64,000 bases of DNA from Zygnema circumcarinatum SAG 698-1b (taxonomy: Eukaryota; Plantae; Zygnematophyceae): positions 558,001 to 622,000 of the forward strand of contig CM074808.1 of the NCBI GenBank assembly GCA_037447605.1, given 5' to 3'. Below, in pieces: positions 5,106-62,792 of the stretch. The position numbers were made by a program, and so were the translations under genes. The notes beneath the pieces are model-generated. The model was not told the origin of the DNA. It ran no database searches and saw nothing but the letters and a program-made list of their open reading frames with translations. Each line of letters opens with the position of its first letter. The stretch's first letter is position 1.

Positions 5106-5114
5106 CTTTGAGAA

Positions 5115-11100: not shown

Positions 11101-11124
11101 GTTTTTGACCCCTCAATCTCAACA
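5115..11124 (+). mobile_element. Ty1/Copia LTR retrotransposon B, near full length, degenerate
   Basis: Partial 5' LTR 5115-5459 (5122-5264 aligns to 10670-10811; ends ATCTCAACA). Internal motifs: knuckle CFRCGK (~6219), protease IDTGASKQMC (~6373), WHRRLGH (~7233), integrase DLCGP and PQSNGAAERVNRTL, RT HQLDIKT, PYRSAIGSLMYLMVGTRPDLA (9183-9767), RNase H KSKHIKIDY. PPT AAGAGGGA (10203-10210), then 3' LTR. Confidence 0.93.
10212..11124 (+). repeat. 3' LTR of Copia B
   Basis: TG...CA ends, begins after the PPT, TATA-like TGTATAAAG at ~10979, and homologous to the partial copies at 4732-5105 (-) and 5115-5459 (+). Confidence 0.85.
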
Positions 11125-13080
11125 TGTTTCAAGATGGTCAACCTCTGGCGTATGAAAGTCGCAAAATGAATCCCGCTGAGCGCAACTATTCTGCAACAGA
11201 ACAGGAACTGCTTGCAGTGGTCCACGCCCTGAGGACATGGCGGTGCTATTTAGAGGCCAGCCGTCCGCGGTGATCGCGACCACCGTCCGGTGGCGTTCCT
11301 CTCAACTTAGCGGAGATGTTGTCCTAGCTGGCCCGACACGGTGGTCTAGCAGGGGTCCCCTCAAAGGTTTATTTGCCGATTAAGGTGTCGGCGGGGAAGG
11401 CTGAATGCTACTTGAGACCCAGTGGCGGCCTGCGGCATCTTTACTGCACGGATGGTGCGCTCGTCGACTCGGTGTTGGTGGAGCGAGATGGCCAGTGAGG
11501 GCGGCCAACCCCGGTCTCAGTCTCCGGGTATGCTTTGTCATAGATCCCTCCACGATGGCGCGGTCAACCCTCACCGCTCTCCTAGAACTTCCGAGGCCAG
11601 ATGATCGGGGAGGGGTATCGCGTGATCCTTTGTTCTGGATGGCGAGTAGCCCAGCTATAAGGACAAAGTGGTGTACAGGGCCAGGATTACAGTACCCGCG
11701 GCCCGTGAGTTAGTGGGTACCCAAGGCGGGGGTATGCGGCAGCTCGTGCAGGTGAGCTACATGATCCTCCGTACCGAGGTCACATGGGAGTTGCCAAAAC
11801 CCATGAGGCACTGCTCTGAGAGTTCTGGTGGCCTGGACTCTCGAGGGATGTGAAAGCGTATGTGTACTACATTTGTCCAAACATCAGCCAGAAACAAACC
11901 CCTTGCTTGGCGGGATCCACATTTAAACGACCCCTCACACCTCCTTTTTAGGAATGGAGACCCGGTGTGGGTTATGGACTTGATCTGGTCTTCTGCCCGC
12001 CTCGGGGGCATGACTCCATCCTGCGTCTTTGTCGATGTTCGGCAAGATGGTGCATTTGCACCAAGCTACTAAAACGTTGCCAGGGCCGGCGACGTGCGGT
12101 TGTATGTTGACAAAGTGTGGAGCGGCATGGTCTTGGTCGAGAAATTGTGTCGACGTGATCCACGATTCACCGGCCATTTTAGGGCCGAGTGCTCAAAATC
12201 GTTGGGACGAAGCGGCGTTGAGTAAACACCACCCACTTAAACCGATGTGGCGGGGAGCGGAGCGGGTGAGCGGATCCTGGAGGGATTACCTCCGGCGTAT
12301 GTGGGACCCCACCCGGATGGGTGGGATGAGCTTGCTCCCGATGGTGAGTGCATCGTGTAATGCTTTCCACGAGGTCCATTGGGTACCACCCCTTTCTTCC
12401 TGAACTTTGGCCAGCATCCCCTAAATCCCTTGCAACCAAGGGATCAGCCCCCTGACCCGTGGAACATGGGTGTCCACAGAACCCCAACCCTTAGGCGAGA
12501 GGTGATGGGACTCAACCTCCGCCCCTGATCGAGATCTTTTCAATGGAGCTAATGCGAGGCCCATTTTGCCGAGGGGCCACATGGGAATACGCTGAAAGCG
12601 GCCGATCGGCGACAAAGGCCTATCTTGACCCGTTAGGTACTTCCAGCTCACCTTGATGAGGCGATGAGGTGTTGTAGAAATACGGCGAACGAGACTCAAA
12701 GCTTATACGGCGGAACCGTAAAATTTGGCAGCCGCTTCATTGGACCTTCGAGAATTGAGCGAATCAATGATATAATAAACACAGTTGGATTTACCACCCA
12801 TGAAGGTGCATCGGTCTTTTCATGTGGGTTTTGCTAAGGTCTACGTAGTAGCGATAGGAGGTGTCAACACACCCTCCCCCACAGGTGGAACTTGAAGGTG
12901 AACTTGGTATGAAGTTGAAGTAAATTCAAGCCCGCAGTATTGTGAGAAGGGTGGCTCTTCCGTCCGCAGAATACCTCGTGAGAGGAAGTGTGGTTGGGCT
13001 AGGGTTGAACATAGCACATGGGAGGCAGGAGCAACTTAACCAATTGCAGGAGCTCATCAGCTTATGCTTGGGAAGCATGG
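11125..13080 (+). mobile_element. Ty3/Gypsy chromovirus pol fragment (RNase H, integrase, chromodomain)
   Basis: FQDGQPLAYESRKMNPAERNYSATEQELLAVVHALRTWRCYLE (RNase H) directly follows LTR B. Then GHMGVAKT and WWP (integrase Zn-binding region, ~11780-11835), FIGP and FHV (GPY/F module, ~12737-12827), and YEVE..EYLV..STWE (chromodomain, ~12908-13025). Many frameshifts. Confidence 0.85.
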
Positions 13081-14630: not shown

Positions 14631-14682
14631 NNNNNNNNNNGAACGGGCGCGGATCCGTCGAACGCAACTCCGTTACGCTACA

Positions 14683-17290: not shown

Positions 17291-17802
17291 AGCGTCAGGT
17301 CCGTAGTGATTTTGTCTGCTGACGTTTTTCTGGTTCATTTGTGGGGGGCGGCCGTACGGAATTGCCCGGGGAAAAAATGTATTTTTTGAGGATATACCCG
17401 TTTTGTACCCGTCGTTAGTGCGCTTTTTCTTGAGGCATTTTGTGGTTCGGATCGGTTTGCTCTGGAAAGTTTGTAGCTTGCTGACGTACAATCGACAGGT
17501 TTGCGGCTTTACGATCCATTTCCGGTTTCTGCAACGTCAGCGCCAAACCTTGATCAACAAAGAAATTTTGATCGTCCGGTCATGGTTTCAAAAGTTTTAG
17601 TCCTGACCCGTGGGCAGGCAGAAACGTTTTGAGGACCCCCCCCCCCCCCCCCCCNNNNNNNNNNCCCCCCCCCCCCCCCCGCTGTGCAGTAAAATTTACC
17701 TTCCAGAGCTCCTGGTTTCCTGCAGCAATTGTCGCAGGACCTGCACAAGGCAGAGCAGCACTCCAACCAATCTCCTGCAGCTGGAGCCTCCTCTCGGCAG
17801 CC

Positions 17803-26024: not shown

Positions 26025-28926
26025 CTACCTGTTGGGCCTATCAGGATCAACGGAACTGGAAACATATCCCCACAGGTTGTCTCTGTCTGATACAGAACTC
26101 CCCAACTCCACAGGTTCCATTTCCACCTCACTTTCCCGCCCACTGTGAGTCTGCTCTGATGAATTATGGTGGGTCGCGAGTCTTCTAGATACATCGTCAG
26201 CACCATATGTTGCATGGACCCCATAGAACACATATACAAGTATTGTGACAATTGTCCATATGAAAAGGCGGTAGTAAGAACGGTAGTCAAGTGTGGCGAG
26301 AAGGAAGACGTTGAGAAGCATAGAGAAGGATGCCAGCCATGGCATACTTGGGGCCACAAATCCTTCAGGTCTGCGAGCTTCCGGAATAAAAATCTGCAAA
26401 AAGGGCCGAGAGATAGAGGTCAGCTTCTTAGGCCCTACAACCCCCCGGAAAAAGGAACTATAAACCGAGTCTCTGGGGGTTCAGGGCTCTCAGAAGCCAT
26501 GAAACGGTTTTACACGTCCGTGCAGAACTCCGTAGACTTACCCACAGAGAGAGGGTGGTGAGAAACCAGAGAGTGAAGAAGACAGCTGGGCCCATACTGC
26601 TATTTCGTTGGTACGAGATTCCCAACCCGAGGGAGCTGACAAGAATGGCTGCAAGGTGGCAAAGTATAGGCACTGGCGATTTTTGTCCAGGAATATAGGA
26701 CCGCCTGTAACCCCCACCAATGGATGAATTCCACTCTTAAACGAAACGTGAAGGCTAACCAAGTAAGGCAGGGGCTACGGCAGTGCTGGGATGAAAAATC
26801 TAAAGTCGTATCCTAAAGGTATATTTTTCTACGCAGGTGAAGCAGTATGTGAATTCACATGCGGCCGGAAAGTGAAACGACGGGAGAGGACGAAAGAGGA
26901 AGTAGTTAAGGAGTGGCCATACCTGTAGAGCAGCGCAGCAGCTACCATGAGGAAAATAAAGAGAGTTCCAATCGAGACCATGTTGGTAAGAGTTTCAAGA
27001 GATGTGAAGAATGCGATCAATGCGGTAACAGCACCTGTGAGGCGCAACAAGAAGAGCAAAATGAAGTGAGACTAAATGGCAAGTCCGGCTAGGTAAACTA
27101 CATCTATGAGAAGTTCAGAAAGGGAGAAAAAATGCTTATGCCCTTCCAAACACTTCGTGAGTCATTAAAACAAGGTGCTCACCTAGCCCTATCGTAGAAG
27201 CGACTGGTGTCCTCGTCTTCTCATGCACATGCGCGAATGCCTTCGGTAGTAAATGCGCCCTCGACATCACCATAGTGATGCGCGCTTGCGCAAGGAGACT
27301 TACCAAAAGTGATGTCAAGATTCCCATTACCGCCCCTAAGGCCACTACATAACGTGCCCATCTCCATCCGGCTATTTGAGAAAAAGCGGTGGAAAAAGGG
27401 GCATTCAGATCAATCTTTTGATATGGCACCATGAGGCACAATGACAACGACATAAAGACGTAGAGAACCGTGACGATGGAAACAGAACCGATAATTCCTA
27501 CAGGCAGATCCCTGGCAGGTTTCTGAACCTCTTCAGCCAAAGTAGCCACTGCATCGAACCCGACAAAGCTGAAGAAAACTAGAGCTGCCGCGTTCACAAC
27601 TCCATGATTACCATACGGTTTAAAGTTCCGTGTGACATTTTCCGCTTTTCCCTCAATGAAGCCGGCTAGAATCACGAAAAGTATCACCAATATAGTCAGA
27701 ATAGACACTACCGAGTTGACTATTGAGCTATCTTTTGTTCCGTAGCATAAAAGGGCCACTAGAAGGCCTATAACCAGCACCGCCAAGGGATCAAGCTCCA
27801 AATTTCCTGCCTGAATTCTGAAGGCGTCTGAATTTTGACCACATAGTGAGGCAAAGTATGATGTGAACCCACGAGCCACAGCAGCGCTTGATAGAATGTA
27901 CTCAAGAAGTATATTGGAAACTGTAATAAAGGCCGGAAATTCTCCGAACGTTACAAGAAGGTAGGAAAAGGCTCCACCAGCAATGGGCATTTCGACAGCA
28001 AATTCAGAGTAGCAGATAGCAGAAAGAAAAGCAGAGAGAGCCGCCAAAATAAAAGAAATAGCAACAGCAGGGCCTGCATAATCTCTTGCAGCCACACCTG
28101 TGATTACAAAAATACCTGCACCCAAACATTTCGTAAAAGGTTACAACATGCAAGCTTGGGATTGCAGTCCACAAGGGTTTTGATTCGACAGAAAATACAG
28201 ATTGAAAGTTGTTTGACTCTACGCTGGACAGTGTAACTTCAACAGAAGTGTGTTAGCACAGTATCTTATTGGCCAAACATCTGAACATCGCCAAGTTAAT
28301 GACTTTTCCTTTTCCTTTATGATCTTCACTAGGGGGGAATGGTTATCATAGCAGAAACTCTCAAAAAAATGTTCTAGAAAACATCCGAAATCATGATTCC
28401 GATCATTCCGAAACTGTTGTTTGCGGTTAAAACCAATTTACTTCTGCGAACTACAAATCTTCCAGAACATTCGACTTCAACAACTTGACCTGAAGGACAA
28501 TGAACTAGCTTTGTCCATTCGTGACCCTCGCAAGAAACCACTTGCATTATTGAAGTTGGTGAGAAGTTAGAAACTTGGATCAGTCATCGCTTCATCAACC
28601 AAGGAACGACTACTATCACTTCCTATGCTCCATGTTAGGCATTCAAATTTGTAGTCTCTTTCTGACCAAAGTAAGGAAACAATCCTGATCAAAATCTGCA
28701 AGTTTAGCCAAATACCTGCGCCAACAATGCAACCAATGCCGAAAAAGAGGGCGTCGAATGCAGTCAAGTTTTTTCTCATCTCATTGCTGCCCTCCGAGCT
28801 CTGCTGTGCCATAAGATCGTTTGCATCCTGAGCCAAAAACATCCTTTCTCGGAGCCGTCCTGGTATTGCTTTTGCATTGGCGCTGAACTGCTGCCAGGCA
28901 TCCTTCACGGACTCCCTTCTTCCCAT
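26025..28926 (-). CDS. Cationic amino acid transporter (APC superfamily, CAT family), 5 exons
   Basis: Exons 28926-28716, 28115-27183, 27034-26923, 26704-26542, 26393-26025 with GT-AG and consistent phases. Motifs GIGCIVGAGIFVITG, GPAVAISF, YSEFAVEMPIAGGAFSY, FFSFVGFDAVATLAEE, VSIGTLFIF and a C-terminal AA_permease_C-like segment (F.AP.MPWL..YGVH). Confidence 0.96.
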
Positions 28927-29519
28927 ACTGATGACAGAATATACCTTAACTTTCTCCAGAAAAAAACTGTAAAACTGTATCCTATTATTGATCAGAATTT
29001 CTTCCAACGAAAGACTATTATTCCGCTTGCATAAAAGAGCTATTCACAAAACCAAACAGTTGATTAAGCAGGCATTGTAAGCAGGTCGATCGACCGCTTC
29101 TATAGCGTTTCAAACCCTAAAAGACCGATTTCGAAGCCCTCATTGTTCAGAAAGAAATAAAAATTATAGAAGAAGAAGCTGTATCACTACACTGGATATG
29201 AAATTTTGAATTTTTCTTCTTAAAAAAGAGAGAACCGGAGCGATCGCTTGGTAAGAAAAACCGTGTTTGAAAGTAGGGGAAAGTCTCTGAAAGGGAAGAG
29301 GTGTGGGCATGAGAGCATCTGGCAAAGGCCCTTATGGGCTGGTCCTTGGTAACTTTATCGAGGGTGTCTTTCTTTAGACAGAAAAAGATAGCTAATCAGA
29401 GACTGCCACGTAAGAAAGTATGTCCGACGTGAAAAGTTATGATTGGTCCACTACTAAAGTTCACACCAATAGAAGCTTCCCATTTTTTTCTCTTTCTCTG
29501 TACCTCTCTCGCTCTCTCT

Positions 29520-34709: not shown

Positions 34710-38525
<3,816 letters not shown>

Positions 38526-39746: not shown

Positions 39747-42700
39747 ATGTTACCACGTCTCCGCTCGCATCCCTCCTCCCTCTTCAGGGGGGCGAAAAAA
39801 ACCCTTCCTTCTCTCCAATACCCCACACCCAAAAGCTCCAAACCATTCGAAACTCCCCCTGCCAACCCCAACCTCTCCCACAATGGAAACATTCGTATTT
39901 TTATCACCAAAAACTTCAAAAACCATAATCATTCTACCAACAGTTCTATCCAAGATATCTCCAACAGCATCTCAAAGTTGACCGCTTGTCACGGATTTCA
40001 GACCCATGTGGAGCTGCCACGTGGCAGCTTAAACGCAGACAAGGCCACCCGCCCAGGGCAGCACCGATCGCCAATAACTGACTCCCTGTGGAAAATTGCG
40101 TCCGAAAGAAATTGGGACGGGCCGCCCCAAACAGAGCTCATCACAAAAACGGCCTCCGATTCGCTAACGGAGGTGCGTTACGCTTTTTCAACGGATTCAG
40201 TTTTACGGGAACGCTACAGAAATCCGTGGGGAGTCGTGAAAATAGGTCAAATTTTGGAGGATCTCGACTCGATCGCTGGCGCGGTGGCTACAAAGGTGAG
40301 GAGGGATTTGGATCACTTTTGGGGATTTTTATTAGATTTTAGGGTTTAAGGGTATTGAGGATTTTGCGGGGTTTAGGGTTGAAGGGTTTTAGGGCTTGAA
40401 GCCGGGCATTCCTTCCTTCAGGTTTTTTTTTTTTCTTATTCTTTGATGAAATTCGCGTTCAGGATGTTGAAAAATGTTGAGGGTGCTTAAGACCACCCCT
40501 TTGCAGCTTCCTTCAGACCCTTCTATTTGCTTGCTCCTATTTATTCATTCATTTTTGGGTTTATTAATTTAAAATTCCTTCTTTCTGATTGGAAGTAGAT
40601 CATGGAGCTTAAAAAATCCCGAGCACCTGCACACCCCATCATTTCATTCTCCCTCACTTTCCCATCGTAAAGGCGTAGCCAATGGCGGGGTGCCACCTGG
40701 CAGCACTGCGATGATAACGACAAAACCACCCGCCCGCTGCTCCTCGTGACGGCCTCCATCGACAAGATCACCCTCAGAAGGCCTCTTCTCCTGGATGCTG
40801 ACGTGGCAGTCAGGGGAGCTGCCACGTGGGTAGGAAGGTCATCCATGGAAATCGCCATTGACGTCATCCAACCAGACGCACAAGGTGCGATAGATTCCGA
40901 TTATCATTAAAAAAGAAAAAATTGGGCGCAATTTGTGTACATGTACTCCATGCGTAGACATACGAAAAGAAATAAATTTGCATTTGGGATTTTCCACAAC
41001 TGATGCTCTTAACCTTTGAAGACCTAGAAAGTTGTCAACCTGAAATTGCAAAACTAGGTTGATCCTCCCTCCACTCTCTCTCTCTCCCCACTCTCCTCTC
41101 CCTCACTTCTCATCTCTTCACTCCTCACTCTCTCTCTCCCTCTTCCCACTCTCTTCTCTCTCTTCTCCTTTCTTCACTCAACTCTCTCTCTCTCCCTCTC
41201 CCCACTCTCTTCTCTCTCTCTTCTCCCCTCTTCTCTCTTCACTGAAAGCTCTCTCTTTGCATTCTCTTCTCTCACTCTCGCCTGCCGTCACTCAACACAC
41301 TCTCTCTCTCTCTCTCTCGCCCTCTCTCTCTCCCACAGACCCCTCCTGCGATCCAGTGGCTGTCCATGCCAAGTTCACATTCGTAGGGCGAGACGCGAAG
41401 TCGAACGCGGCCGCTCCCCTGAACCGCCTCCGCCCCGAAACGGACCGCGAAAAAAAACTTTTTGCGGACGGCGCGGCGCGGGACGCTCAGCGCAAAGCCG
41501 AGCGCTCCAAACGGACCGGGGGAGAGGCCCGGGGCTCGGACCCATTCCAACCGGGAAGGTGCATGCATGCACATGCACATGCATCTCTAAAACAAGCATT
41601 CCTCTCTCTCTCTCTCTCCCTCTCTCTCTCTCCCCCTCTTTCTCGCTCTCTGTCTCTCCCTCTCGCTCTAGACCATGCATATGCTGAACCATACCCCCAA
41701 ACCTAAAACTCGAAACCCTCAACTTAACACCCTAAACTCTGAATCTTGGCAGCGATTTGCGGCTTATGGAGCTTCTAGAAGAGGGCCGGCTGATGTGTGA
41801 GATGCCGGCCCTTACTAGGGGAGACGCCCTCCTTGTGCGAGACACCCGCCTGGAGAATGCGATCATCTGTCAGCCGCAGCAGCGCAACAGCTATGGCCGC
41901 ATCTTCGGAGGGTTTCTGATGCGGCGCGCCTTCGAGCTCGCATTCTCCACCTGCTATGTCTTCTGTGGGGCACGCCCTCTCTTCCTGGAGGTTGACTATG
42001 TCGACTTTCACAGACCGGTACGGTTTAGGTTAGTTGTTTTTTGTTATTTTTTTGTTGGTTTTGGGATTTTCGAGTTTCTTGTGGTGTTTGTCTTTGGGTT
42101 CTTTTGGGTCTATGTGATAGTAAAGAAGTTGAGGATGTCTAAGGTGAGCGGATTCGCTGTTCTTAGGAGGATTTTGAAGTTTTTAAGCTGATGTGGGACC
42201 CGTCTCTTGCTGTTAGGTGGACATTGGAGACCTCCTGCGCTTCAAGTCGTGTGTTTTGTATACGGAGGCAAATCTTGAACGCCCAAAAATTCATGTTGAA
42301 GTGACAGCTATAGTCATGCAGCCGGAAGTGCGAAAGTCAAAGGTAGGGAACAGTTCTCTCCCTCTCCCTCTCCCTGCCTTTGTCCCACTGTACAAAGAAG
42401 TGTCACTTGCAGGGAGATAAATCTCAGACTAAAGCACTGAGCACTCCCACAGCCGTCTGAAACCTCAAAACCCTAAAAAGCCTAAAAAGTTCAGTCGTAT
42501 TCGTGCGTATCACTGCCCTCATCATGTGGGCGAGGGAGGGAGGGCAGGTCTCCAACACGTTCTACTTCACGTTCACGTTCGATCCACTCCCTTGCGGCCA
42601 CAGGGGGGGCGTAGTGAAGCGCGTTATTCCCACAACGGAGGAGGAGGCGCGCTCCATGCTAGCGCGCTATGATGCGGACCATTTGGACCATGCCTTGTGA
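39747..42700 (+). CDS. Acyl-CoA thioesterase, ACOT9-like double hot-dog fold, probable organellar targeting peptide, 6 exons
   Basis: Exons 39747-40295, 40704-40884, 41339-41558, 41753-42017, 42217-42342, 42548-42700. Motifs LRERYRNPWG..IGQILEDLDSIAG, LLLVTASIDKI, TWVGRSSMEI, FTFVGRD, PQQRNSYGRIFGGFLMRRAFELA, VDFHRPVDIGDLL and VSNTFYFTF. N-terminus MLPRLRSHPSSLFRG is R/S-rich. Confidence 0.95.
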
Positions 42701-45222: not shown

Positions 45223-45967
45223 GTTTTGAATATCTCTCTCTCCCTCTCCCTCTCCCTCCTCCCTCTCCTTCTCCTGCTTTCAGATTCCAATTATCTCTCT
45301 ACTCCTCCTATAAGCGACTCTTAAACACTTTTCTATCCAGACTCTAGCCTGCTTACGCTCGATACGGGCACATAATTTGAATAAGTAGCCAATCGCGTTC
45401 AGTCTTCTGCAGATGGCAGCTGCCATGGCTCCCAGCCTGCCACGTGGCATGCCTGCAATTGCCTTGAAAAGAGGAAGTCCAGCCATTGTACGACGCGCCG
45501 CCCCATGGCTCCCAGTCCATGCGCCGGCACGCTGGCAGGCCGACCCGATGCTGCGGACAGGCCCCTGCCTGCCCGCCCGCCCTGCCTGCCTGCCTGCGCG
45601 TGATGGCGACCCCTGAAAGCGACCGCCATGGCCCGGCCTTGCAGGGAGCTGTCCACGCCAGCGCCGCCGCCCTTCTGCTTGGCGGCCCAAAAACAGGAAA
45701 AATCTGAGAAAAATGGGAAAACTGTTCTACGACACGTTCGCATGTAGCTTGGTAAGACTAGTTCCCGTTTCAGTCTTTTAGTTTTTGATTAGTTTCTGCG
45801 CTGACGTTTTATCTACGTCAGTACAGAAACCACGAGAGTCGTCCGGACCCCCTCCTCGCAGTTGCGCACATGGAAGGGCGCGCTGGAACTGGAACCTGGC
45901 TGGTCCTTTTCCATGTGCAATTTCCCGTTCCAGTTTCCTGCAGAAGTTGCGAACGCAGCCCGAATCC

Positions 45968-46235
45968 AATGGTTGGCAATCATTGAATTCCAATGGTTGG
46001 CGACTATTCCATTCCATTCCAATGGTTGGCAACCACTCCATTCCATTCCAATCCATTGGTTGGAAACCATTCCATTCTAATGGTTGGCGACCATTCCATT
46101 CCATTCTATTCCAGTCCATTCCATTCCATTCCATTCCAATGGTTGGCAACCATTTCATTTCATTCCCTTCCATTGGTTGGCAACCATTCCATTCCAATGG
46201 TTGGCAACCATTCCATTCCCTTCCATTGGTTGGAG
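45968..46235. repeat. Array of ~9 AATGGTTGGCAACCATT palindromes separated by (ATTCC)n pentamers
   Basis: Copies start at ~45968, 45992, 46021, 46055, 46079, 46138, 46172, 46196 and 46225. Those at 46138 and 46196 are perfect. Confidence 0.9.
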
Positions 46236-48926: not shown

Positions 48927-51900
48927 ATGAGAGGCTGCCCCAGCTCCAACGGGAAGCTGGCGGCGGCTGTGGCTCTGTGCGCCATATCGGTGCTGGTTCT
49001 CACTGAGGGAGCGGCAGCCGCGTCTGCTAAGAGCAGAGGATGGATGAAGCCATGGAGCTCCTCGGAGGAGCCGGAGTTTTTCGCCGCAAGGAGGCGCATG
49101 CTGGAATCCTATGCGTTTCCTTGTCCTTCCAACCCTCTTGGACAGTGCGCCTTCTACTTCAAAGGATACGAAAAGTCTGTTCCTGTTTTCAGGTGTGTTA
49201 TTCGATGATACAGTTGGCTGGGGGCTTGCTTTACGGTGGGAAGCTTGTACCTAGGCTGCATTGCATTTTCCGATGCAAGTTTCGAAGCAAGGAATGTACC
49301 TTTGACGTGTTTGGTTTATTCTCTCCACCAAAGTAACTCTTCCTGTGTAACTCCGAGAATTAGAAGTTGCGGAGGGCACGTGGCTGCTTTCGGCGGAGTC
49401 TCTGGCCATTTATCGTTCTGGTCTTCGAAAGCGACTTACTGGGATCACATTCGTGACCCCTTGTATAGCACGTTCGAGCTTTATTTTGTCGATTTTTGTT
49501 TTTGCGTTATTGTCAGAATGTATTATTGGAGCCTCTGTTCTAGCTCTGAATCGTCCGTCGTGTTTGTTGCCGCTTTTATTTTTTTTCAGAGACCTTTTCG
49601 GTTTTATTATTTGACTGTTCTCATTCCTTTTTACAGTAAGAAATTGGAGTTGAGATAAGACCGAGCTTATTTCTCATGCAGTTTTCGTCATTGACGTGAA
49701 TAATGAATTTTGATTAGAGCAATGTGTAAAATTAAAAATGAGATGTAGGGAAGTATGTAAGAAAACGTGAACTTCAACTCTACATACTCGCTGGTGCCTG
49801 ATTTACACTAGTCAGGTGAGCTGGGCCTACATGCTGATTAAGCCTGTGCATGTTTGCAGTCTTGATGGGTCTCCTGATACTCCAATCAGTCCTGCTATTG
49901 TCGACTCTCTATCGACTGACGAAGTGGAGGTGGATCAAGCTGGGAACGCAAATTTCCTTTGCCCTCTAATTGGGACTAAGGTGTCTGCCGGAAACCAGTT
50001 CTATGTTTCAAATTTTGGAGGCGACGCCAAGCTTACCTTCCGAGCTTTCAATCAGGTAACTGACTTTATTCTTTAGACGATCAAAATCTTACTTCTGACC
50101 GAGCCTGTCGTATTTTTTCAATTCGATTCGACTGTATTGTTTTTTATTTGTTCGTCATAGTTGACTGCACGTTGTGTGGTCGTTCGTATTAGCGCGCAAT
50201 TGCTTTTGACTCCTTAGTTTTTATATTTCCATGAAGTTCTTTTCCTTTCTGGGTTGTGTCCGTGCGACTTTTAGTCTGTGTCACCATCAGCGATTTACAA
50301 AAGTTTTTACTATCGATGAAACTGTTTATTCAACATTTTTCTCATGTCTTTTGCGGTTTCAGGAACCGAAGGTGTTTTATGAGAACCAGTGCTACGTTCT
50401 GCCGTTGAACGCCATTCAACTGAGATCTTCAAACGGCCAAAACTTCAACCTCAGAGCTGGTGACGGAGTCACAGCCTACCCTGAGCAAAGACGCTGTGTG
50501 GTATTCCAGACAGGGCCAAGTGGGGCTTCCTCCACTTGTGTAAATACTACAACGTTGGCACCGCCTGCCACGCCTGCCATGACGCAACCACCTCCCGCCT
50601 GCCCCGTTTGTCCCCCGCCAACTGCGTATCCTTGCGCTCCGCCTCCTTCTCCTCCGCCTCCCTCACCCCCACCACCGTCTCCTTCGCCCCCTTCTCCTCC
50701 GCCACCGTTCCCACCGCCGCCGTCTCCATCACCACCAACTGGGAGACCTTCTGGTCTAGGAAAAGCTCCGCCTCCAGTCGTAGGTAAGAGCCCGCCACCA
50801 CCATTCTCTCCTTCACCACCACCTTCTCCACCTTTTCCACCTGGTAAAGCACCACCACCATTCCCACCTCCATCTCTTTCACCCCCTCCTCCATCTCCTC
50901 CACCTTCCCCACCCCCATCACCTCCATTCCCTCCTGGGAAGGCACCTCCACCTTCCCCTCCCACACCCCCATCACCACCTCCCCCTTCTCCTCCGCCACC
51001 ATTTCCGTCCCCTCCCCCTCCTTCCCCACCCCCCTTACCACCTTTCCCTCCTGGAAAGGCTCCTCCCCCTTCTCCACCCCCACCCCCATCTCCCCCTCCA
51101 TCCTCTCCCCCCCCACCCTCTCCTCCCCCACCTTTCCCACCACCTCCCCCTTCACCTCCACCATTGCCCCCCTTTCCTCCTGGGAAAGCACCACCTCCTT
51201 CCCCACCACCAAGCCCATCTCCACCACCTCCCTCTCCCCCCCCACCATCCCCGCCCCCTCCTTTCCCTCCCCCTTCACCTCCACCACTACCCCCCTTTCC
51301 TCCTGGGAAAGCACCACCTCCTTCCCCACCACCAAGCCCATCTCCACCACCTCCCTCTCCCCCCCCACCATCCCCTCCCCCTCCTTTCCCTCCCCCTTCA
51401 CCTCCACCACTACCCCCCTTCCCTCCTTCGAAGGCACCACCTCCTTCCCCACCACCAAGCCCATCTCCACCACCTCCGTCTCCCCCCCCACCATTCCCAC
51501 CCCCTCCTTTCCCTCCCCTTCACCTCCACCACTACCCCCCTTCCTCCTGGGAAAGCACCACCTCCTTCCCCACCACCAAGCCCATCTCCACCACCTCCCT
51601 CTCCCCCCCCACCATCCCCGCCCCCTCCTTTCCCTCCCCCTTCACCTCCACCACTACCCCCCTTTCCTCCTGGGAAAGCACCACCTCCTTCCCCACCACC
51701 AAGCCCATCTCCACCACCTCCGTCTCCCCCCCCACCATCCCCGCCCCCTCCTTTCCCTCCCCCTTCACCTCCACCACTACCCCCCTTCCCTCCTGGGAAA
51801 GCACCACCTCCTTCCCCACCACCAAGCACATCTCCACCACCTCCCTCTCCCCCCCCACCATCCCCGCCCCCTCCTTTCCCGCCTCCTTCACCTCCACCAC

Positions 51901-54900
51901 TACCCCCCTTTCCTCCTGGGAAAGCACCACCTCCTTCCCCACCACCAAGCCCATCTCCACCACCTCCGTCTCCCCCCCCACCATTCCCGCCCCCTCCTTT
52001 CCCTCCCCCTTCACCTCCACCTCTACCCCCCTTCCCTCCTGGGAAAGCACCACCTCCTTCCCCACCACCAAGCCCATCTCCACCACCTCCCTCCCCACCC
52101 CCACCATCCCCGCCCCCTCCTTTCCCTCCTCCTTCACCTCCACCACTACCCCCCTTCCCTCCTGGGAAAGCACCACCTCCTTCCCCACCACCAAGCCCAT
52201 CTCCACCACCTCCCTCTCCCCCCCCACCATCCCCGCCCCCTCCTTTCCCTCCCCCCTTCACCTCCACCTCTACCCCCCTTCCCTCCTGGGAAAGCACCAC
52301 CTCCTTCCCCACCACCAAGCCCATCTCCACCACCTCCCTCCCCACCCCCACCATCCCCGCCCCCTCCCTTCCCTCCTCCTTCACCTCCACCACTACCCCC
52401 CTTCCCTCCTGGGAAAGCACCACCTCCTTCCCCACCACCAAGCCCATCTCCACCACCTCCTTCCCCACCCCCACCATCCCCGCCCCCTCCTTTCCCGCCT
52501 CCTTCACCTCCACCACTACCCCCCTTTCCTCCTGGGAAAGCACCACCTCCTTCCCCACCACCAAGCCCATCTCCACCACCTCCCTCCCCACCCCCACCAT
52601 CCCCGCCCCCTCCCTTCCCTCCTCCTTCACCTCCACCACTACCCCCCTTCCCTCCTGGGAAAGCACCACCTCCTTCCCCACCACCAAGCCCATCTCCACC
52701 ACCTCCTTCCCCACCCCCACCATCCCCGCCCCCTCCTTTCCCTCCCCCTTCACCTCCACCACTACCCCCCTTCCCTCCTGGGAAAGCACCACCTCCTTCC
52801 CCACCACCAAGCCCATCTCCACCACCTCCCTCCCCACCCCCACCATCCCCGCCCCCTCCTTTCCCGCCTCCTTCACCTCCACCACTACCCCCCTTTCCTC
52901 CTGGGAAAGCACCACCTCCTTCCCCACCACCAAGCCCATCTCCACCACCTCCGTCTCCACCCCCACCATCCCCGCCCCCTCCTTTCCCTCCCCTTCACCT
53001 CCACCACTACCCCCCTTCCCTCCTGGGAAAGCACCACCTCCTTCCCCACCACCAAGCCCATCTCCACCACCTCCCTCCCCACCCCCACCATCCCCGCCCC
53101 CTCCTTTCCCTCCCCCTTCACCTCCACCACTACCCCCCTTCCCTCCTGGGAAAGCACCACCTCCTTCCCCACCACCAAGCCCATCTCCACCACCTCCGTC
53201 TCCCCCCCCACCATCCCCGCCCCCTCCTTTCCCTCCCCCTTCACCTCCACCTCTAACCCCCTTCCCTCCTGGGAAAGCACCACCTCCTTCCCCACCACCA
53301 AGCCCATCTCCACCACCTCCTTCCCCACCCCCACCATCCCCGCCCCCTCCTTTCCCTCCCCCTTCACCTCCACCACTACCCCCCTTCCCTCCTGGGAAAG
53401 CACCACCTCCTTCCCCACCACCAAGCCCATCTCCACCACCTCCGTCTCCCCCCCCACCATCCCCGCCCCCTCCTTTCCCTCCCCCTTCACCTCCACCACT
53501 ACCCCCCTTCCCTCCTGGGAAAGCACCACCTCCTTCCCCACCACCAAGCCCATCTCCACCACCTCCCTCCCCACCCCCACCATCCCCGCCCCCTCCCTTC
53601 CCTCCTCCTTCACCTCCACCACTACCCCCCTTCCCTCCTGGGAAAGCACCACCTCCTTCCCCACCACCAAGCCCATCTCCACCACCTCCGTCTCCCCCCC
53701 CACCATCCCCGCCCCCTCCTTTCCCTCCCCCTTCACCTCCACCACTACCCCCCTTCCCTCCTGGGAAAGCACCACCTCCTTCCCCACCAGAAGCCCATCT
53801 CCACCACCTCCCTCCCCACCCCCACCATCCCCGCCCCCTCCTTTCCCTCCTCCTTCACCTCCACCACTACCCCCCTTCCCTCCTGGGAAAGCACCACCTC
53901 CTTCCCCACCACCAAGCCCATCTCCACCACCTCCCTCCCCACCCCCACCATCCCCGCCCCCTCCTTTCCCTCCTCCTTCACCTCCACCACTACCCCCCTT
54001 TCCTCCTGGGAAAGCACCACCTCCTTCCCCACCACCAAGCCCATCTCCACCACCTCCCTCCCCCCCCCCACCATCCCCGCCCCCTCCTTTCCCTCCTCCT
54101 TCACCTCCACCACTACCCCCCTTCCCTCCTGGGAAAGCACCACCTCCTTCCCCACCACCAAGCCCATCTCCACCACCTCCTTCCCCACCCCCACCATCCC
54201 CGCCCCCTCCTTTCCCTCCCCCTTCACCTCCACCACTACCCCCCTTCCCTCCTGGAAAAGCACCACCTCCTTCCCCGCCACCAAGCCCATTTCCACCACC
54301 CCCCTCTCCCCCCCCACCATCCCCGCCCCTTCCTTCACCTCCCCCATCACCTCCCCCATCACCTCCACCTCTACCACCTTTCCCTCCTGGTAAGGCACCT
54401 CCTCCTTCACCCCCCCCAAGCCCATTCCCACCCCCTCCCACCCCTCCACCACCATCTCCATTTCCACCTCCACCTGGGAAGCCATCAGGTTTAGGCAGCG
54501 GTCCGCCGCCACTCGTAGGTAAGAATGCCCCTCCACCTTCTCCACCACCTCCTTCCCCACCCCCACCATCCCCGCCCCCTCCCTTCCCTCCTGGGAAGCA
54601 CCACCTCCTTCCCCACCCCCACCATCCCCGCCCCTTCCTTCACCTCCCCCATCACCTCCCCCATCACCTCCCCCATCACCTCCCCCATCACCTCCCCCAT
54701 CACCTCCCCCATCACCTCCCCCTCTTCTCTCTCCATCCCCACCTACTTTCCCTCCATCCTCTCCTTTCCCTCCTGGGAATCCTTCCCCACCACCAAGCCC
54801 ATCTCCACCACCTCCCTCCCCACCCCCACCATCCCCGCCCCCTCCCTTCCCGCCTCCTTCACCTCCACCACTACCCCCCTTTCCTCCTGGGAAAGCACCA

Positions 54901-57900
54901 CCTCCTTCCCCACCACCAAGCCCACCTCCACCTCCCTTCTCTCCCTCTCCATCTCCACCTCCCCCGCCCATCTCTCCATCTCCACCTCCACCTTCCCCCC
55001 CATTCCCTCCTGGTAAAGCACCTCCTCCCTCTCCCCCAAGCCCGTCCCCACTGTCTCCCCCATCGTCCCCACCCCCTCCTTCGTTCACTTCTCCTCTCCC
55101 ATCACCACCCTTACCCTTGGAGAAAGCACCTTCTCCACATCTAAGCCCATCGCCGCCTCCTTTTCCATCTCCATCTCCCCCTCCTCCCTCACCACCCCCA
55201 TCCCCTCCTTTCCCTCCAGGTAAGGCACCCCCTCCTGTCCCAAGTCCACCCCCACTACCCTCCTTCCCCCCCATTCCCTCCTGGTAAAGCACCTCCTCCC
55301 TCTCCCCCAAGCCCACCACCACCCCCCACACTTCTCTCTCCATCCCCACTTACTTTCCCTTTATCCCCTCTGTTCCCTTCTGGGAATGCACCACCTCCCT
55401 TACCACCACCAAGCCCACCTCCACCTCCCCCTCCCCTCTCTCCATCTCCACCCCCACCTTTCCCCTCATTCCCTCCTGGCACAGCACCTCCTCCCTCTCC
55501 CCCAAGCCCACCACCACCTCCCCCTCTTCTCTCTCCATCCCCAATTACTTCCCCTCCATCCCCTCCTTTCCCTCCTGGGAATGCACCATCTCTCTCTCCG
55601 CCACCAAGCCCACCTCCACCTCCCTTCTCCCCTCTCTCCATCTCCACCTCCCCCGCCCACCTTCCCCCTCCATTCCCTCCTGGTAAAGCACCTCCTCCCT
55701 CTCCCCCAAGCCCACCACCATCTCCCCCTCTTCTCTCTCCATCCCCACCTACTTTCCCTCCATCCTCTCCTTTCCCTCCTGGGAATTCATCACCTCCCTC
55801 TGCACCACCAAGCCCACCTCCACCTCCCCCTCCCCTCTCTCCATCTCCACCCCCACCTTCCCCCCCATTCCCTCCTGGCAAAGCACCTCCTCCCTCTCCC
55901 CCAAGCCCACTACCACCTCCCCCTCTTCTCCCTCCATCACCACCTACTTTCCCTCCATTCCCTCCCTTCCCTCCTGGGAATGCATCACCTCCCTCTCCAC
56001 CACCAAGCCCACCTCCACCTCCCCCTCCCCTCTCTCCATCCCCAACTACTTTCCCTCCATCCCCTCCTTTCCCTCCTGGGAATGCACCACCTCTCTCTCC
56101 GCCACCAAGCCCACCTCCACCTCCCTTCCTCCCTCTCCATCTCCACCTCTCCATCCTCCACCTTCCTCCACCTTCCCCCCCATTCCCTCCTGGTAAAGCA
56201 CCTCCTCCCTCGCCCCCAAGCCCACCTCCACCTCCCTTCTCTCCCTCTCCATCTCCACCTCCCCCGCCCATCTCTCCATCTCCACCTCCACCTTCCCCCC
56301 CATTCCCTCCTGGTAAAGCACCTCCTCCCTCGCCCCCAAGCCCACCTCCACCTCCCTTCTCTCCCTCTCCATCTCCACCTCCCCCGCCCATCTCTCCATC
56401 TCCACCTCCACCTTCCCCCCCATTCCCTCCTGGTAAAGCACCTCCTCCCTCGCCCCCAAGCCCACCTCCACCTCCCTTCTCTCCCTCTCCATCTCCACCT
56501 CCCCCGCCCATCTCTCCATCTCCACCTCAACCTTCCCCCCCATTCCCTCCTGGTAAAGCACCTCCTCCCTCGCCCCCAAACCCACCACCACCTCCCCCTC
56601 TTCTCTCTCCATCCCCACCTACTTTCCCTCCATTCCCTCCCTTCCCTCCTGGGAATGCATTACCTGCCTCTCCACCTCCAAGCCCACCCCCTCCTCCCCT
56701 CTCTCCATCTCCACCCCCACCTTCCCCACCATTCCCTCCTGGTAAAGCACCTCCTCCCTCTCCCCCAAGCCCACCATCACCTCCCCCTCTTCTCTCTCCA
56801 TCCCCACCTACTTTCCCCCCATCCTCTCCTTTCCCTCCTGGGAATGCATCACCTCCCTCTCCACCACCAAGCCCACCTCCATCTCCCCCTCCCCTCTCTC
56901 CATCCCCAACTACTTTCCCTCCATCCCCTCCTTTCCCTCCTGGGAATGCACCACCTCTCTCTCCTCCACCAAGCCCACCTCCACCTCCCTTCTCTCCCTC
57001 TCCATCTCCACCTCCCCCGCCCATCTCTCCATCTCCACCTCCACCTTCCCCCCCATTCCCTCCTGGTAAAGCACCTCCTCCCTCGCCCCCAAGCCCACCA
57101 CCACCTCCCCCTCTTCTCTCTCCATCCCCACCTACTTTCCCTCCATCCTCTCCTTTCCCTCCTGGGAATGCATCACCTCCCTCTCCACCTCCAAGCCCAC
57201 CTCCCCCTCCCCTCTCTCCATCTCCATCTCCACCTTCCTCCCCATCCCCAAGCCCACCACCACCTCCCCCTCTTCTCTCTCCATCCCCACCTACTTTCCC
57301 TCCATCCTCTCCTTTCCCTCCTGGGAGTGCATCACCTCCCTCTCCACCTCCAAGCCCACCTCCCCCTCCCCTCTCTCCATCTCCACCTCCACCTTCCTCC
57401 CCATTCCCTCCTGGTAAAGCACCTCCTCCCTCTCCTCCAAGCCCAACACCACCTCCTCTTCTCTCTTCATCCCCACCTGCTTTTCCTTCATCCTCTCCCT
57501 TCCCTCCTGGGAAAGGATCACCACCTCCACTCCCAAGCCCTGCACCATCTCCTCCTTCTCCATTCCCTCTCCTTAATCCGCCTCCAGCGCCTCCATTCCT
57601 CTCTGGTAAGGCACCCTCTCACTCTTCGCCCCTCAGCTCAAGATCTTCTCTTTTTCCACTTCATTCACCTGAACCCCTCCTTTGCCTCCTGGGAGACAGC
57701 TTCCTTTTGAACCTCCATCTTGCCTATTCCATCTCCTGCCCCCCCACCATCCTTTCCTCCTCTCTCTCCTCCACTTCCTTTTCCCTCTCGGAAAGGGAGC
57801 CTCCTTCACTCAATTCCCCTTCTAGCTCGTCCTTCGCTATCCCTCTCATCCACGCCCCGTGCTTTCCCTCTACCTGCGGAACAGACTCCTATTTCTCCAT

Positions 57901-60900
57901 CCCTGAACCCTTCGCTCCTTCCTTCTCCTCCATCCTCAACCCTAACCCCTCCATCTCTCCATCGCCTCCTTTTCCTTTCGGGATGGCACATCCCTTTTTT
58001 TTAACCCTCTTGGGTTTCAGTCCCTCCTTTCTCTCCTTCATCCCATTTCCTTCCTTCATTTTCTTCACCCCCTCTTACAACCGAACTGGCGCTCCCTATT
58101 TCTTCCCCCATCCTCACCCTCCTCTTCCCCCAACCTCACCCTCTCTTTTCCCTTTCAGGAAGGCACTCCCTCTTTCTCCACCTCCTAGCGCGTCACCCCG
58201 TCCTCCCTCAGCTATTGCCTTAACCTCAACTCTGCCCTCTTCTCCCTCTATCCCTTCCTTTCCCTGCTAGGGAAGGACGACCTCTTCCTCCACCTACCCT
58301 CTCACCATCTCCTCCCTCTTCCTTCCGCAACCCCTCCCTTCCCTTCTTTCTCTCTCGATAAGGAAATCCCACTTTCTCCAACACCTCTTGTTACTTGGTC
58401 CATCCCCTGGCCCTCCGTCTTCTCTTCCTCAACCCTCCCTTCCACGCCCTCGAAGAAGAGAGCCCCTTCCTTCTCCACCCACTGTCTTATCACTACTTCA
58501 ACTCTCCCCCTCTCGCCCCACCCTCTCCTTTCCTTTTACCTCCACTACTACCCCCCGCAGAAGAAAATTCCCGTCGTTTCCCTCCACCTCTCCTTTCCTA
58601 CATCCTCCTTTCTAATTCCCAAACCCATTTCACCCTATCCTGCCTTCCCCCTTCTCCTGTTTTTGTCGTTGGCAAGAAACTACTTCCTACTTGTCCTTNN
58701 NNNNNNNNCCCCCCCCCTTTTACCTCCATTTTTCCCTTCTCCACTTTCTTTTTCGTTGTTTTTTCCTTCCGTCCTTATCTTCCCAGAAGGAAAGTCCCCC
58801 CATTTTCCCGCAAGCCCATTGCTATCTCTACCCTGTTGTTCGCTTTCCCTGGCCTTTCCTTTTCCCCCCTCTCACCTCCTTTTCTCTCTGGTAAAGCTTG
58901 CTTTTTTCTCCCATCCCCTAAACCCATCCCTTCAGCAGGTAGATCTCTTTACCCTTTTGGTTTGAAGATCAGCATGCTTAGCCTCCCATTCCCTTCCGTC
59001 CGATCCCTTCTATTCGCTGCTAGTTCCTTCTGTTCTCTGTTCAGATTATCGCTTCCAACAGTAAATCATTTACTACCATTTGTTGCGCATCTCCTTGCAA
59101 TTGGACAAGGATAAGGTCATTTTTACTTTGCCATTATTAAAAAGGGGTCTATTTCAAAATGTCTAACGTCCAATATGACGGACTCACCTTCGCTCCCCGT
59201 CAACAAGCTTGTCCTCCTTTCGGTGACTTTTTCTGAGTCAAATTGCGTATATTCATTTGCTTCTTTGACTCTGCTGTGAATTTGCTCAGATGTGGGATGA
59301 GGATATGTACGTCACGGTTCAAATACTGTTTCATTCGTTATTGCCTCTGGTGTTCTGCGATCTATTTTTCGCGCAGTGCAAGAAAGACTTATTCACTTTC
59401 TCGTATTGTGGCTGTTTGCAGCAAGTCCGCCTCCTTCACCTCCGCCCCCTTCGCCTCCACCGCTACCGCCTTTCCCTCCCGGTAAGGCACCACCACCTTC
59501 TCCACCTCCGCCGCCATCTCCTCCACCCCCATCACCCCCTCCACCACCTCCGTCACCTCCTCCACCATCTCCACCACCCCCCTCACCGCCACCATCACCC
59601 CCACCACTACCGCCTTTCCCTCCCGGTAAGGCACCACCACCTTCTCCACCTCCGCCGCCATCTCCTCCACCCCCATCACCCCCTCCACCACCTCCGTCAC
59701 CTCCTCCACCATCTCCACCACCCCCCTCACCGCCACCATCACCCCCACCACTACCGCCTTTCCCTCCCGGTAAGGCACCACCACCTTCTCCACCTCCGCC
59801 GCCATCTCCTCCACCCCCATCACCCCCTCCACCACCTCCGTCACCTCCTCCACCATCTCCTCCACCTCCATCACCCCCCCCACCACCTCCTTCACCTCCT
59901 CCACCATCTCCACCACCCCCCCTCCTTCACCTCCTCCACCATCTCCACCACCCCCCTCGCCGCCACCATCACCCCCACCACTACCGCCTTTCCCTCCCGG
60001 TAAGGCACCACCACCTTCTCCACCTCCGCCGCCATCTCCTCCACCCCCATCACCCCCTCCACCACCTCCGTCACCTCCTCCACCATCTCCACCACCCCCC
60101 TCACCGCCACCATCACCCCCACCACTACCGCCTTTCCCTCCCGGCAAGGCACCGCCACCTTCTCCACCTCCGCCACCATCTCCTCCACCTCCATCACCCC
60201 CCCCACCGCCTCCTTCACCTCCTCCACCATCTCCACCACCCCCCTCGCCGCCACCATCACCCCCACCACTACCGCCTTTCCCTCCCGGCAAGGCACCGCC
60301 ACCTTCTCCACCTCCGCCACCATCTCCTCCACCTCCATCACCCCCCCCACCGCCTCCTTCACCTCCTCCACCATCTCCACCACCCCCCTCGCCGCCACCA
60401 TCACCCCCACCACTACCGCCTTTCCCTCCCGGCAAGGCACCGCCACCTTCTCCACCTCCGCCACCATCTCCTCCACCCCCATCACCCCCTCCACCACCTC
60501 CGTCACCTCCTCCACCATCTCATCACCCCCCCCACCACCTCCTTCACCTCCTAGGCTCCTCCACCATCTCCTCCACCTCCATCACCCCCCCCACCACCTC
60601 CTTCACCCCCCCCCCCCCCACCACCTCCTTCACCTCCTCCACCATCTCCACCACCGCCTACGCCACCACCATCACCCCCTCCACCATCACCACCTCCACC
60701 ATCTCCACCTGTTCCAGTTGGAACACCTTCACCTCCACCATCACCCCCACTCCTCTCTCCTTCCCCACCTCCACCATCTCCTCCACCTCCCTTCCCTTCC
60801 CCTCCTCCCCCATCACCCCCACCACCATCGCCTCCCGTTCCTGTGGGTACACCTTCACCTCCTCCATCACCCCCACCCCCCTCTCCTTTCCCACCTCCGC

Positions 60901-62792
60901 CATCTCCTCCACCTCCTTCTCCTTCCCCTCCTCCCCCATCACCCCCACCGCCGTCTCCTCCCGTTCCTGTTGGCACCCCTTCACCTCCTCCATCACCACC
61001 ACCTCCTCCACCATCACCCCCACCCCCCTCTCCTTCCCCACCTCCACCGTCGCCTCCACCTCCCTTCCCTTCCCCTCCTCCCCCATCTCCCCCGCCACCA
61101 TCACCTCCCGTTCCGGTCGGCACCCCTTCACCTCCTCCATCACCACCACCTCCTCCTCCATCACCCCCGCCCCCCTCTCCTTTCCCACCTCCGCCATCTC
61201 CTCCACCTCCCTCTCCTTCTCCCCCTCCCCCATCACCCCCACCACCATCACCTCCCGTTCCTGTCGGCACCCCTTCACCTCCTCCATCACCACCACCTCC
61301 TCCACCATCACCCCCGCCCCCCTCTCCTTTCCCACCTCCGCCATCTCCTCCACCTCCCTCTCCTTCCCCACCTCCCCCATCACCCCCACCACCATCACCT
61401 CCCGTTCCTGTCGGCACCCCTTCACCTCCTCCATCACCACCACCACCTCCACCATCACCTCCACCTCCCTCTCCTTCCCCTCCTCCTCCATCACCCCCAC
61501 CACCATCACCTCCCGTTCCTGTCGGCACCCCTTCACCTCCTCCATCACCACCACCTCCTCCACCATCACCCCCGCCCCCCTCTCCTTTCCCACCTCCGCC
61601 ATCTCCTCCACCTCCCTCTCCTTCCCCACCTCCCCCATCACCCCCACCACCATCACCTCCCGTTCCTGTCGGCACCCCTTCACCTCCTCCATCACCACCA
61701 CCTCCTCCACCACCTCCACCCCCCTCTCCTTTCCCACCTCCACCATCACCTCCACCTCCCTCTCCTTCCCCTCCTCCTCCATCACCCCCACCACCATCAC
61801 CTCCCGTTCCTGTCGGCACCCCGGCTCCCCCTCCATCACCCCCTCCTCCACCTCCGTCTCCACCGCCGCCCTCTCCCCCACCGCCTTCTCCACCACCTCC
61901 ACCTCCCTCACCACCCCCGCCCTCCCCCCCACCCCCCTCTCCTCCACCCCCTCCTCCCTCGCCACCCCCTCCATCTCCACCACCCCCCTCTCCTCCACCA
62001 CCACCTCCCTCACCACCCCCTCCCTCTCCCCCACCTCCCTCTCCTCCACCACCACCTCCCTCACCACCCCCTCCCTCTCCCCCACCTCCCTCTCCTCCAC
62101 CACCACCTCCCTCTCCTCCACCACCACCTCCCTCACCACCTCCTCCCTCTCCCCCACCTCCCTCTCCTCCACCCTCTCCTCCCTCACCGCCCCCTCCCTC
62201 TCCCCCACCTCCCTCCCCACCACCCCCTCCTCCCTCACCTCCTCCAACTTCGCCTCCACCTCCCTCTCCTCCCCCTCCACCTCCCTCACCCCCGCCTCCC
62301 TCACCGCCACCTCCTTCCCCACCTCCACCCCCTCTCTGTCCGACCGATTGCCCAGCAAACCCCTTCGACCTCTGCGACTTTTACTTCCTGGGCTATGAGT
62401 TTGAGGTTCCCATTCTGCCCATTGGCTCTTCTGGGCCTGATGAGTCCATCAGCCCCCCCATCTACTTCAACGACACTGGGATCACCATTCCTGTGGAAGT
62501 CGACAACTCCCAGCAGGGCCGCTTCCTTCAATGCCCCGTTCCTGCAAGTGGAGGCTCTGCCGGTGACCAGTTCTATGCTGTTGGCCAAATTGCCCGTGTC
62601 CTTGTTCGCACCTTCCAGACAACTCCCGGTCGGGAGTTCTTTGAGAACCGCTGCGTCCTCCTGCCCTTGGGATCCATTCAGCTCGTCCTCACTATTGATG
62701 GGGTAGAGCGCACTGTCAATGTGCCACCGGACTTCGACCTCCTCCCCACCACTCCGGAGCGCATGTGCGTTATCTTCAAGACCTCGGCTTAA
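48927..62792 (+). CDS. Secreted extensin-like proline-rich glycoprotein with homologous N- and C-terminal globular domains
   Basis: Signal peptide (LAAAVALCAISVLVLTEGAAA). Exons 48927-49192, 49860-50055, 50363 to an undetermined donor, and last exon 59422-62792. SP3-5 rod with PPGKAPP and PVPVGTP repeats. The two terminal ~140-aa domains align. Frameshifts lie in C homopolymers, and an N gap at 58699 leaves the single-gene model unproven. Confidence 0.8.
51176..54300 (+). repeat. Coding tandem repeat, 123-bp unit, ~25 copies
   Basis: Unit encodes PPGKAPPPSPPPSPSPPPPSPPPPSPPPPFPPPSPPPLPPF (41 aa). The GGGAAAGCA anchor recurs every ~123 bp (51182, 51305, ...). Confidence 0.9.
59475..61830 (+). 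repeat. Coding tandem repeats: 144-bp PPGKA unit (~7 copies), then ~110-165-bp PVPVGTP unit (~9 copies)
   Basis: GK anchors at ~59481, 59625, 59769, 59999, 60143, 60287 and 60431. VGTP anchors run from ~60717 to ~61812. Confidence 0.85.

Follow-up and report, generated by a model that had tools for sequence, protein, structure and literature searches.

The globular-rod-globular build, in which a proline-rich rod joins two globular domains, is known from the pherophorins of the chlorophyte (volvocine) algae, which vary in length between family members (PMC9818292). Chimeric extensins are defined by a signal peptide, at least two SPPP repeats and a domain that is foreign to hydroxyproline-rich glycoproteins (HRGPs) and is not a leucine-rich repeat, kinase or formin domain; in one survey the long ones (>2,000 residues) turned up only in Ostreococcus, Chlamydomonas and Volvox, and not in Klebsormidium or land plants (PMC4769139). 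Extensin epitopes are known in charophyte walls, where their place and function are little known (PMC10762512). The present study concerns a gene in a 64,000-nucleotide stretch of the genome of the streptophyte Zygnema circumcarinatum SAG 698-1b (GCA_037447605.1, contig CM074808.1, positions 558,001 to 622,000; hereafter the window, to which all coordinates refer). The gene runs on the plus strand from an ATG at 48927 to a TAA stop at 62790-62792 and very probably carries two related globular heads, joined by a rod of serine-polyproline (SPn) repeats.

A first-pass annotation, made from the sequence of the window, had likened this architecture to that of the pherophorins; the build is indeed common to both, but the heads are not pherophorin domains (no pherophorin Pfam match in 46 aligned family members), so that a pherophorin-like build has been reached with a different domain. 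Length variation also differs, arising here within one gene by choice of splice donor. With a signal peptide (predicted from hydropathy), 343 SP3 or longer motifs and non-HRGP heads, the protein is a chimeric extensin by definition; like those described it combines a signal peptide, many SP3-5 motifs and non-HRGP domains, the heads here being unnamed (PMC4769139). A predicted long form of up to ~3,690 amino acids, if the first rod segment (rod A) is kept whole, would exceed 2,000 residues, and the predicted short form has ~1,420. It is not a classical extensin: SPn repeats and scattered Lys are shared with the classical extensins of land plants, whereas the two heads of 140-150 amino acids are not, and the ~3,290 rod codons hold no YXY motif and a single Tyr, so that Tyr cross-linking is unavailable in the rod. 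A spliced proline-rich spacer also occurs in the unrelated PEVK region of titin, where spacer length is set by cassette-exon skipping; the analogous variation here uses alternative 5' donors inside one repeat exon. A limited literature search found no published plant or algal wall glycoprotein whose rod length is set by splicing. The gene offers a concrete, testable example of a wall protein from algae related to land plants, with a well-folding head of ~140 residues that is expressible alone, and may supply the cell wall with two kinds of spacer that differ greatly in length.

Two heads of one family

The N-terminal domain comprises 144 residues spread over three exons, and the C-terminal domain aligns with it end to end at 62349-62783. 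Local alignment gave 58 identical residues of 137 (42%) and a score of 217, compared with 30 ± 5.5 (maximum 61) for 1,000 shuffled controls. Five Cys align between the heads, and each head has one further, unshared Cys. A family profile from which the N domain had been left out still matches the three N exons consecutively (profile positions 2-25, 21-93 and 89-142) and also matches the C domain. By sequence, the two heads belong to one family. Local alignment and the family profile both place the domains where the first-pass annotation had located them, and the end-to-end similarity with five conserved Cys that it had described lies far above the shuffled scores. The sixth Cys follows the domain in N-type heads and precedes it in many C-type heads (alignment A2, P0002-P0060), and one subgroup of the family has no Cys matching C106. 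Terminal copies are intron-free in this gene (62349-62783) and in relatives L001, L002 and L003, and upstream copies carry introns.

Pfam contains no convincing family for either head or for the 46 aligned members, giving only single weak unrelated matches, and sequence searches of the PDB returned no match, prion-protein matches at E ≥ 0.07 being noise. The full search recovered 45 relatives at E ≤ 0.001, to which a profile search added five. In the clusters looked up, the sources that carry a name are Mesotaenium, Closterium, Netrium and Coleochaete, with no land plant or red alga among them. Conserved across the family are CP..P...CDFYF.G, QFY, an Arg and N.NPGDGN..P..RRC.VF.T, of which the C head of this gene has a degenerate version of the final motif. 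Scans of IMG/VR gave no match, and a search with the 745-residue terminal frame found no long relatives. AlphaFold2 models the C domain with confidence (pLDDT 93.9, pTM 0.88) as a nearly all-beta sandwich. Structure searches found a weak immunoglobulin/cadherin-like resemblance (Z ≤ 5.4, root-mean-square deviation 3-5 Å) with no clear leader, CBM46 scoring Z 4.7; searches of the ESM Atlas by structure reached TM ≤ 0.41 and by features nothing significant, Foldseek found nothing significant in the PDB, and BFVD yielded nothing. Such weak matches to a predicted model demonstrate neither a new fold nor a function. The first-pass view that the domain lies outside the pherophorins and any named plant family is supported, although that annotation had missed that the domain defines a family of some size whose members occur in numerous other architectures.

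These architectures include single secreted domains, tandem pairs (P0002), proline-linked repeats, and heads or tails on enzymes, among them an aspartic protease (P0016) and, from inspection of the sequences, GDSL-type esterases (P0005, P0015 and P0033). Relatives L011, L002 and L003 are gap-free and show domain, proline linker and domain; L002 carries three domain copies on short proline linkers, and L011, on one gap-free contig, reads leader, Tyr-rich repeat, domain, SPn/YXY linker, domain. Because L002 and L011 have such builds without gaps, the dumbbell is not a product of assembly. L011 (~9500-11212) has in its linker SPPPP, VYK and YXY motifs like those of land-plant extensins. The best scores of the N exons are with enzyme-head types. 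In the family tree the C head groups with L001 (100/99), the split between N-type and C-type being weak (80/74, 84/88). A Closterium family member (L012, 10001-13750) adjoins a fasciclin-domain gene.

One gene with two splice forms

The predicted signal peptide occupies approximately the first 28-32 residues, from hydropathy only (hydrophobic stretch at ~10-30), and the first Cys of the N domain lies near 49122 in exon 1. In relative L002 the domain is interrupted at the same place as by intron 1. Contigs of four sequencing runs (X1, X3, X7 and X8), which share one species label and come from four studies, were compared over 57300-59700. A 1,055-nucleotide X1 contig (depth 112) enters at 59420 from letters found once in the window, at 50752-50781, and X3 has the same 50783/59422 joint, which is a GT-AG splice. 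A 271-nucleotide X8 contig (depth 311, no mismatches) joins 57605 to 59422, also by GT..AG, and neither joint is among the X7 matches listed. The ~980 upstream letters of the X1 contig agree with the length of spliced exons 1-3 plus a leader of ~100 nucleotides; since only 30 of them were read, introns 1 and 2 rest on homology.

The single acceptor at 59422 is common to both donors, at 50784 in X1 and X3 and at 57606 in X8. Each donor splits the Gly codon of a Gly-Lys pair (G/GTAAG, phase 1), and the two lie 6,822 nucleotides, or 2,274 codons, apart; both forms retain phase 1, and their totals are multiples of three, with predicted rods of ~1,050 and ~3,325 residues. The same runs contain the C domain and its 3' flank. 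The contigs are not single molecules, and none spans rod A or the second rod segment (rod B).

The assembly gap at 58699 is intronic in both splice forms and hence separates no two genes, and two genes flanking it are ruled out by the 50783/59422 joint. The separate genes on either side of the gap that the first-pass annotation had considered as an alternative did not emerge, RNA contigs joining both sides, and its one-gene rod is upheld; the alternative donors that set rod length had escaped it. Its rod of thousands of Ser/Pro codons describes the long form and not the short form, which omits rod A, and the rod region between the heads is not unbroken, 57606-59421 with the gap included being intron. 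A model in which donor 58939 is joined to acceptor 59422 and the degraded stretch is an assembly error was rejected: contigs read through 58938, at low depth and with a near-exact match to the degraded DNA.

Further potential splice sites occur in the repeats. A GxPSGLG...VGK motif is duplicated at 50736-50800 and 54471-54535, each copy with AG/GTAAG, 3,735 nucleotides apart and in frame, and these sites could serve as donor, acceptor or recursive splice point. Rod B has four further phase-1 GGTAAG sites (59482, 59626, 59770 and 60000), later copies reading GGCAAG; no in-phase acceptor was identified downstream of them.

A coding repeat with a decayed, intronic tail

In its proline frame the rod is 67% Pro and 16% Ser, with 50 GKAPP motifs, and consists of tandem units with main periods divisible by three. 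Rod A begins with 29 units of 123 nucleotides, followed by units of 96-123 nucleotides. As assembled, the proline frame slips by one base six times in rod A and three times in rod B (near 59916, 60518 and 60553), with an in-frame TAG at 60552-60554, and the assembled rod therefore lacks a single clean frame. Four of twenty 123-nucleotide units in rod A are off by one base in length, like homopolymer errors. These twenty units show 12 distinct variants, of which 9 are synonymous, compared with 31% expected (p=0.002).

Past 57606 the proline fraction drops to ~0.2 whichever frame is read, stop codons appear, and changes are most often C>T; rod A is coding and its tail is not. The purine island of the Gly-Lys-Ala motif nevertheless recurs at spacings of 86-114 nucleotides, with a single spacing of 177, as far as 58890 on the other side of the gap. 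Contigs of X7 and X8 fit this decayed tail with 0-1 differences at depths of 11-29, which establishes it as real DNA. At 58939 a phase-1 GT opens an ordinary T-rich intron through which contigs read unspliced; it is probably an older donor, its use not having been seen. The locus shows a coding repeat turning into an intron, with successive donors still visible. Introns are known to be gained neutrally from a duplicated exon that contains AGGT (PMC4974935).

The domain in a giant-virus-like gene cluster

Five family members form a distinct clade (100/100). Three of them sit on contigs of separate metagenomes (L004, L006 and L008) that have 28-41% GC, no introns and closely packed genes, in the gene order GFAT, this domain, CBM49 protein, then chitin synthase, two polysaccharide deacetylases, UDP-glucose dehydrogenase and PL14 lyase. 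The genes on these contigs are eukaryote-type, and no capsid, DNA polymerase or packaging ATPase hallmark gene was found on the longest contig (31.6 kb), so that the label giant-virus-like is tentative. The three clusters probably derive from one ancestor and so count as one observation. Chloroviruses typically encode the same types of chitin/hyaluronan enzyme, namely GFAT, chitin synthase, UDP-glucose dehydrogenase, deacetylase and PL14 lyase (PMC5408694). The present cluster differs in being one compact, conserved group that includes this domain and the CBM49 protein, whereas in PBCV-1 the UDP-glucose dehydrogenase gene lies ~240 kb away. The CBM49 protein of the cluster carries an unassigned C-terminal domain, and the 31.6-kb contig also encodes a mitochondrial carrier, a PIF1 helicase, a CAP protein and pyruvate phosphate dikinase.

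Proposed function and alternative explanations

SPn rods of HRGPs are hydroxylated, glycosylated and extended. By analogy, the rod of this protein would be hydroxylated, O-glycosylated and extended as polyproline II, with a contour length of ~0.33 µm in the short form and up to ~1.0 µm in the long form, if each residue adds 0.31 nm; the rod may be kinked at its Gly-Lys-Ala breaks. The disulfide-bonded heads would bind wall or mucilage glycan, making the protein a two-point tether. Six Cys per head would leave no free thiol and the rod has no Tyr motifs, for which reason linkage through the heads is expected to be non-covalent. A glycan ligand is suggested by the fusions to secreted enzymes and by the polysaccharide gene cluster, and we consider glycan binding by the heads probable from these sequence contexts; the viral-like cluster also indicates which glycans to test first. 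The cross-linking of wall or mucilage polysaccharides that the first-pass annotation had proposed would draw indirect support from these fusions and the cluster. One spelling of the recurrent Gly-Lys pair is GGT AAG, which may be how the donors arose, and a shift of splicing to an upstream GGTAAG copy would have freed the downstream copies from selection and led to their decay. We therefore favour, as the probable reading, a secreted chimeric extensin with N head, Ser/Pro rod and C head that acts as a tether, the donor determining how far apart its two attachment sites lie; regulated switching of rod length is a tentative addition to it. A more far-reaching version, in which one strain switches donors in the Gly-Lys codons of the rod, changes the distance between the heads about threefold and so tunes the mesh, the heads forming a novel family of carbohydrate-binding domains taken up by giant viruses of algae into a chitin/chitosan cluster, seems rather unlikely.

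Several points weigh against the favoured tether. The type of run was guessed for X1 and is unrecorded for X3, X7 and X8, their spliced joints implying RNA. The two forms come from different samples, which may be different strains, so condition and strain are not separable. The full length of the long form and the connection of rod B to the C head would follow from the gene model, no contig spanning them; rod B has three shifts and a stop as assembled. The head, moreover, has no clear sequence or structure match to a solved carbohydrate-binding module or lectin family (best Z 5.4).

The assembled TAG and the three one-base shifts would, if real, leave the C head untranslated and the product a single-headed rod. 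This appears highly improbable, as the shifts sum to a multiple of three and resemble one-base slips in C runs of otherwise identical 123-nucleotide units, while the region is transcribed and the C head is intact, with 57% identity to a relative. The difference in length could instead be unregulated, reflecting strain variation or leaky GGTAAG splicing in an unstable repeat, with rod A on its way to becoming intron like its tail. The two forms were indeed drawn from different studies and never listed in one run, the 3' part of the array has decayed, and the neutral route of intron gain cited above offers a precedent; yet the variants in rod A are still biased towards synonymous ones and its unit lengths are still divisible by three, and the long joint is abundant in X8 while its unique flank has no depth in X1. 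We regard unregulated variation as somewhat unlikely, and it can coexist with the structural reading.

The heads might bind protein and not glycan, N and C heads docking on each other or on other wall glycoproteins in a head-to-tail network whose mesh is set by rod length. In favour of this, the nearest folds, themselves weak matches, are cadherin/immunoglobulin-like adhesion domains, the tree separates N-type from C-type heads, though with weak support, and polymerisation in vitro is known for the Volvox pherophorins DZ1 and DZ2 (PMC9818292). Against it, many members are secreted with a single head or fused to enzymes, and the viral-like copies sit within a polysaccharide cluster; we judge protein binding quite unlikely. 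A further candidate comes from Closterium. The sex pheromone PR-IP Inducer of this alga, a glycoprotein that is secreted and has ~142 residues, is not known to have named relatives; kinship with the head would parallel the link between Volvox pherophorins and the sex inducer, and a head might then be released as a signal. The family does include single-domain secreted members and is present in Closterium, but no family match bore such a name, and the relationship seems improbable.

Coordinates and other features of the window

Table 1. Features of the gene and of the related gene cluster (window positions, except for the cluster)
Feature	Coordinates	Strand	Description	Basis
Exon 1	48927..49192	+	ATG, signal peptide, spacer, N-domain start; phase 2 end	homology, hydropathy
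Intron 1	49193..49859	+	GT-AG, 667 nt, T-rich, phase 2	homology
Exon 2	49860..50055	+	N-domain middle	homology
Intron 2	50056..50362	+	GT-AG, 307 nt, T-rich, phase 0	homology
Exon 3, constant part	50363..50783	+	N-domain end (to ~50545), Cys/Thr/Pro linker, first SPn stretch	X1, X3 contigs
Donor 1		+	exon 3 constant part ends at AG/GTAAGA, phase 1	X1, X3 contigs
Rod A	50784..57605	+	optional exon 3 extension, 6,822 nt = 2,274 codons, SPn/GKAPPP repeats	X8 joint
Donor 2		+	rod A ends at G/GTAAGG, phase 1	X8 joint 57605/59422
Further GGTAAG donors in rod A	54390, 54519, 55220	+	no use seen so far	
Decayed repeat-array tail	57606..58938	+	intronic; stops in all frames; holds assembly gap	
Assembly gap	58699..58708	.	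within intron of both splice forms; bridged by no listed contig	
Intron remainder	58939..59421	+	T-rich; phase-1 GT at 58939; shared acceptor TTTGCAG	
Exon 4, rod B	59422..62336	+	~970 codons of SPn repeats: 144-nt and 147-nt units, then near-pure SPPPP	
Exon 4, C domain and stop	62337..62792	+	151 aa, six Cys, intron-free	
Conserved compact cluster	L004 2002-9550; L006 2440-12980; L008 3325-13127; L015			

Elsewhere in the window, decayed pieces of a copia-type retrotransposon lie at ~2000-10000, with a gag-pre-integrase domain (Pfam) and reverse-transcriptase-like frames recognised by eye. Three more assembly gaps occur at 14631-14640, 17655-17664 and 36820-36919. An amino acid permease gene occupies 27139-29043 on the minus strand. 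Exons at ~39750-41700 on the plus strand resemble acyl-CoA thioesterase by eye, one piece scanned having no Pfam match, and a short-unit repeat rich in AATGG/CCATT extends over ~45830-46200.

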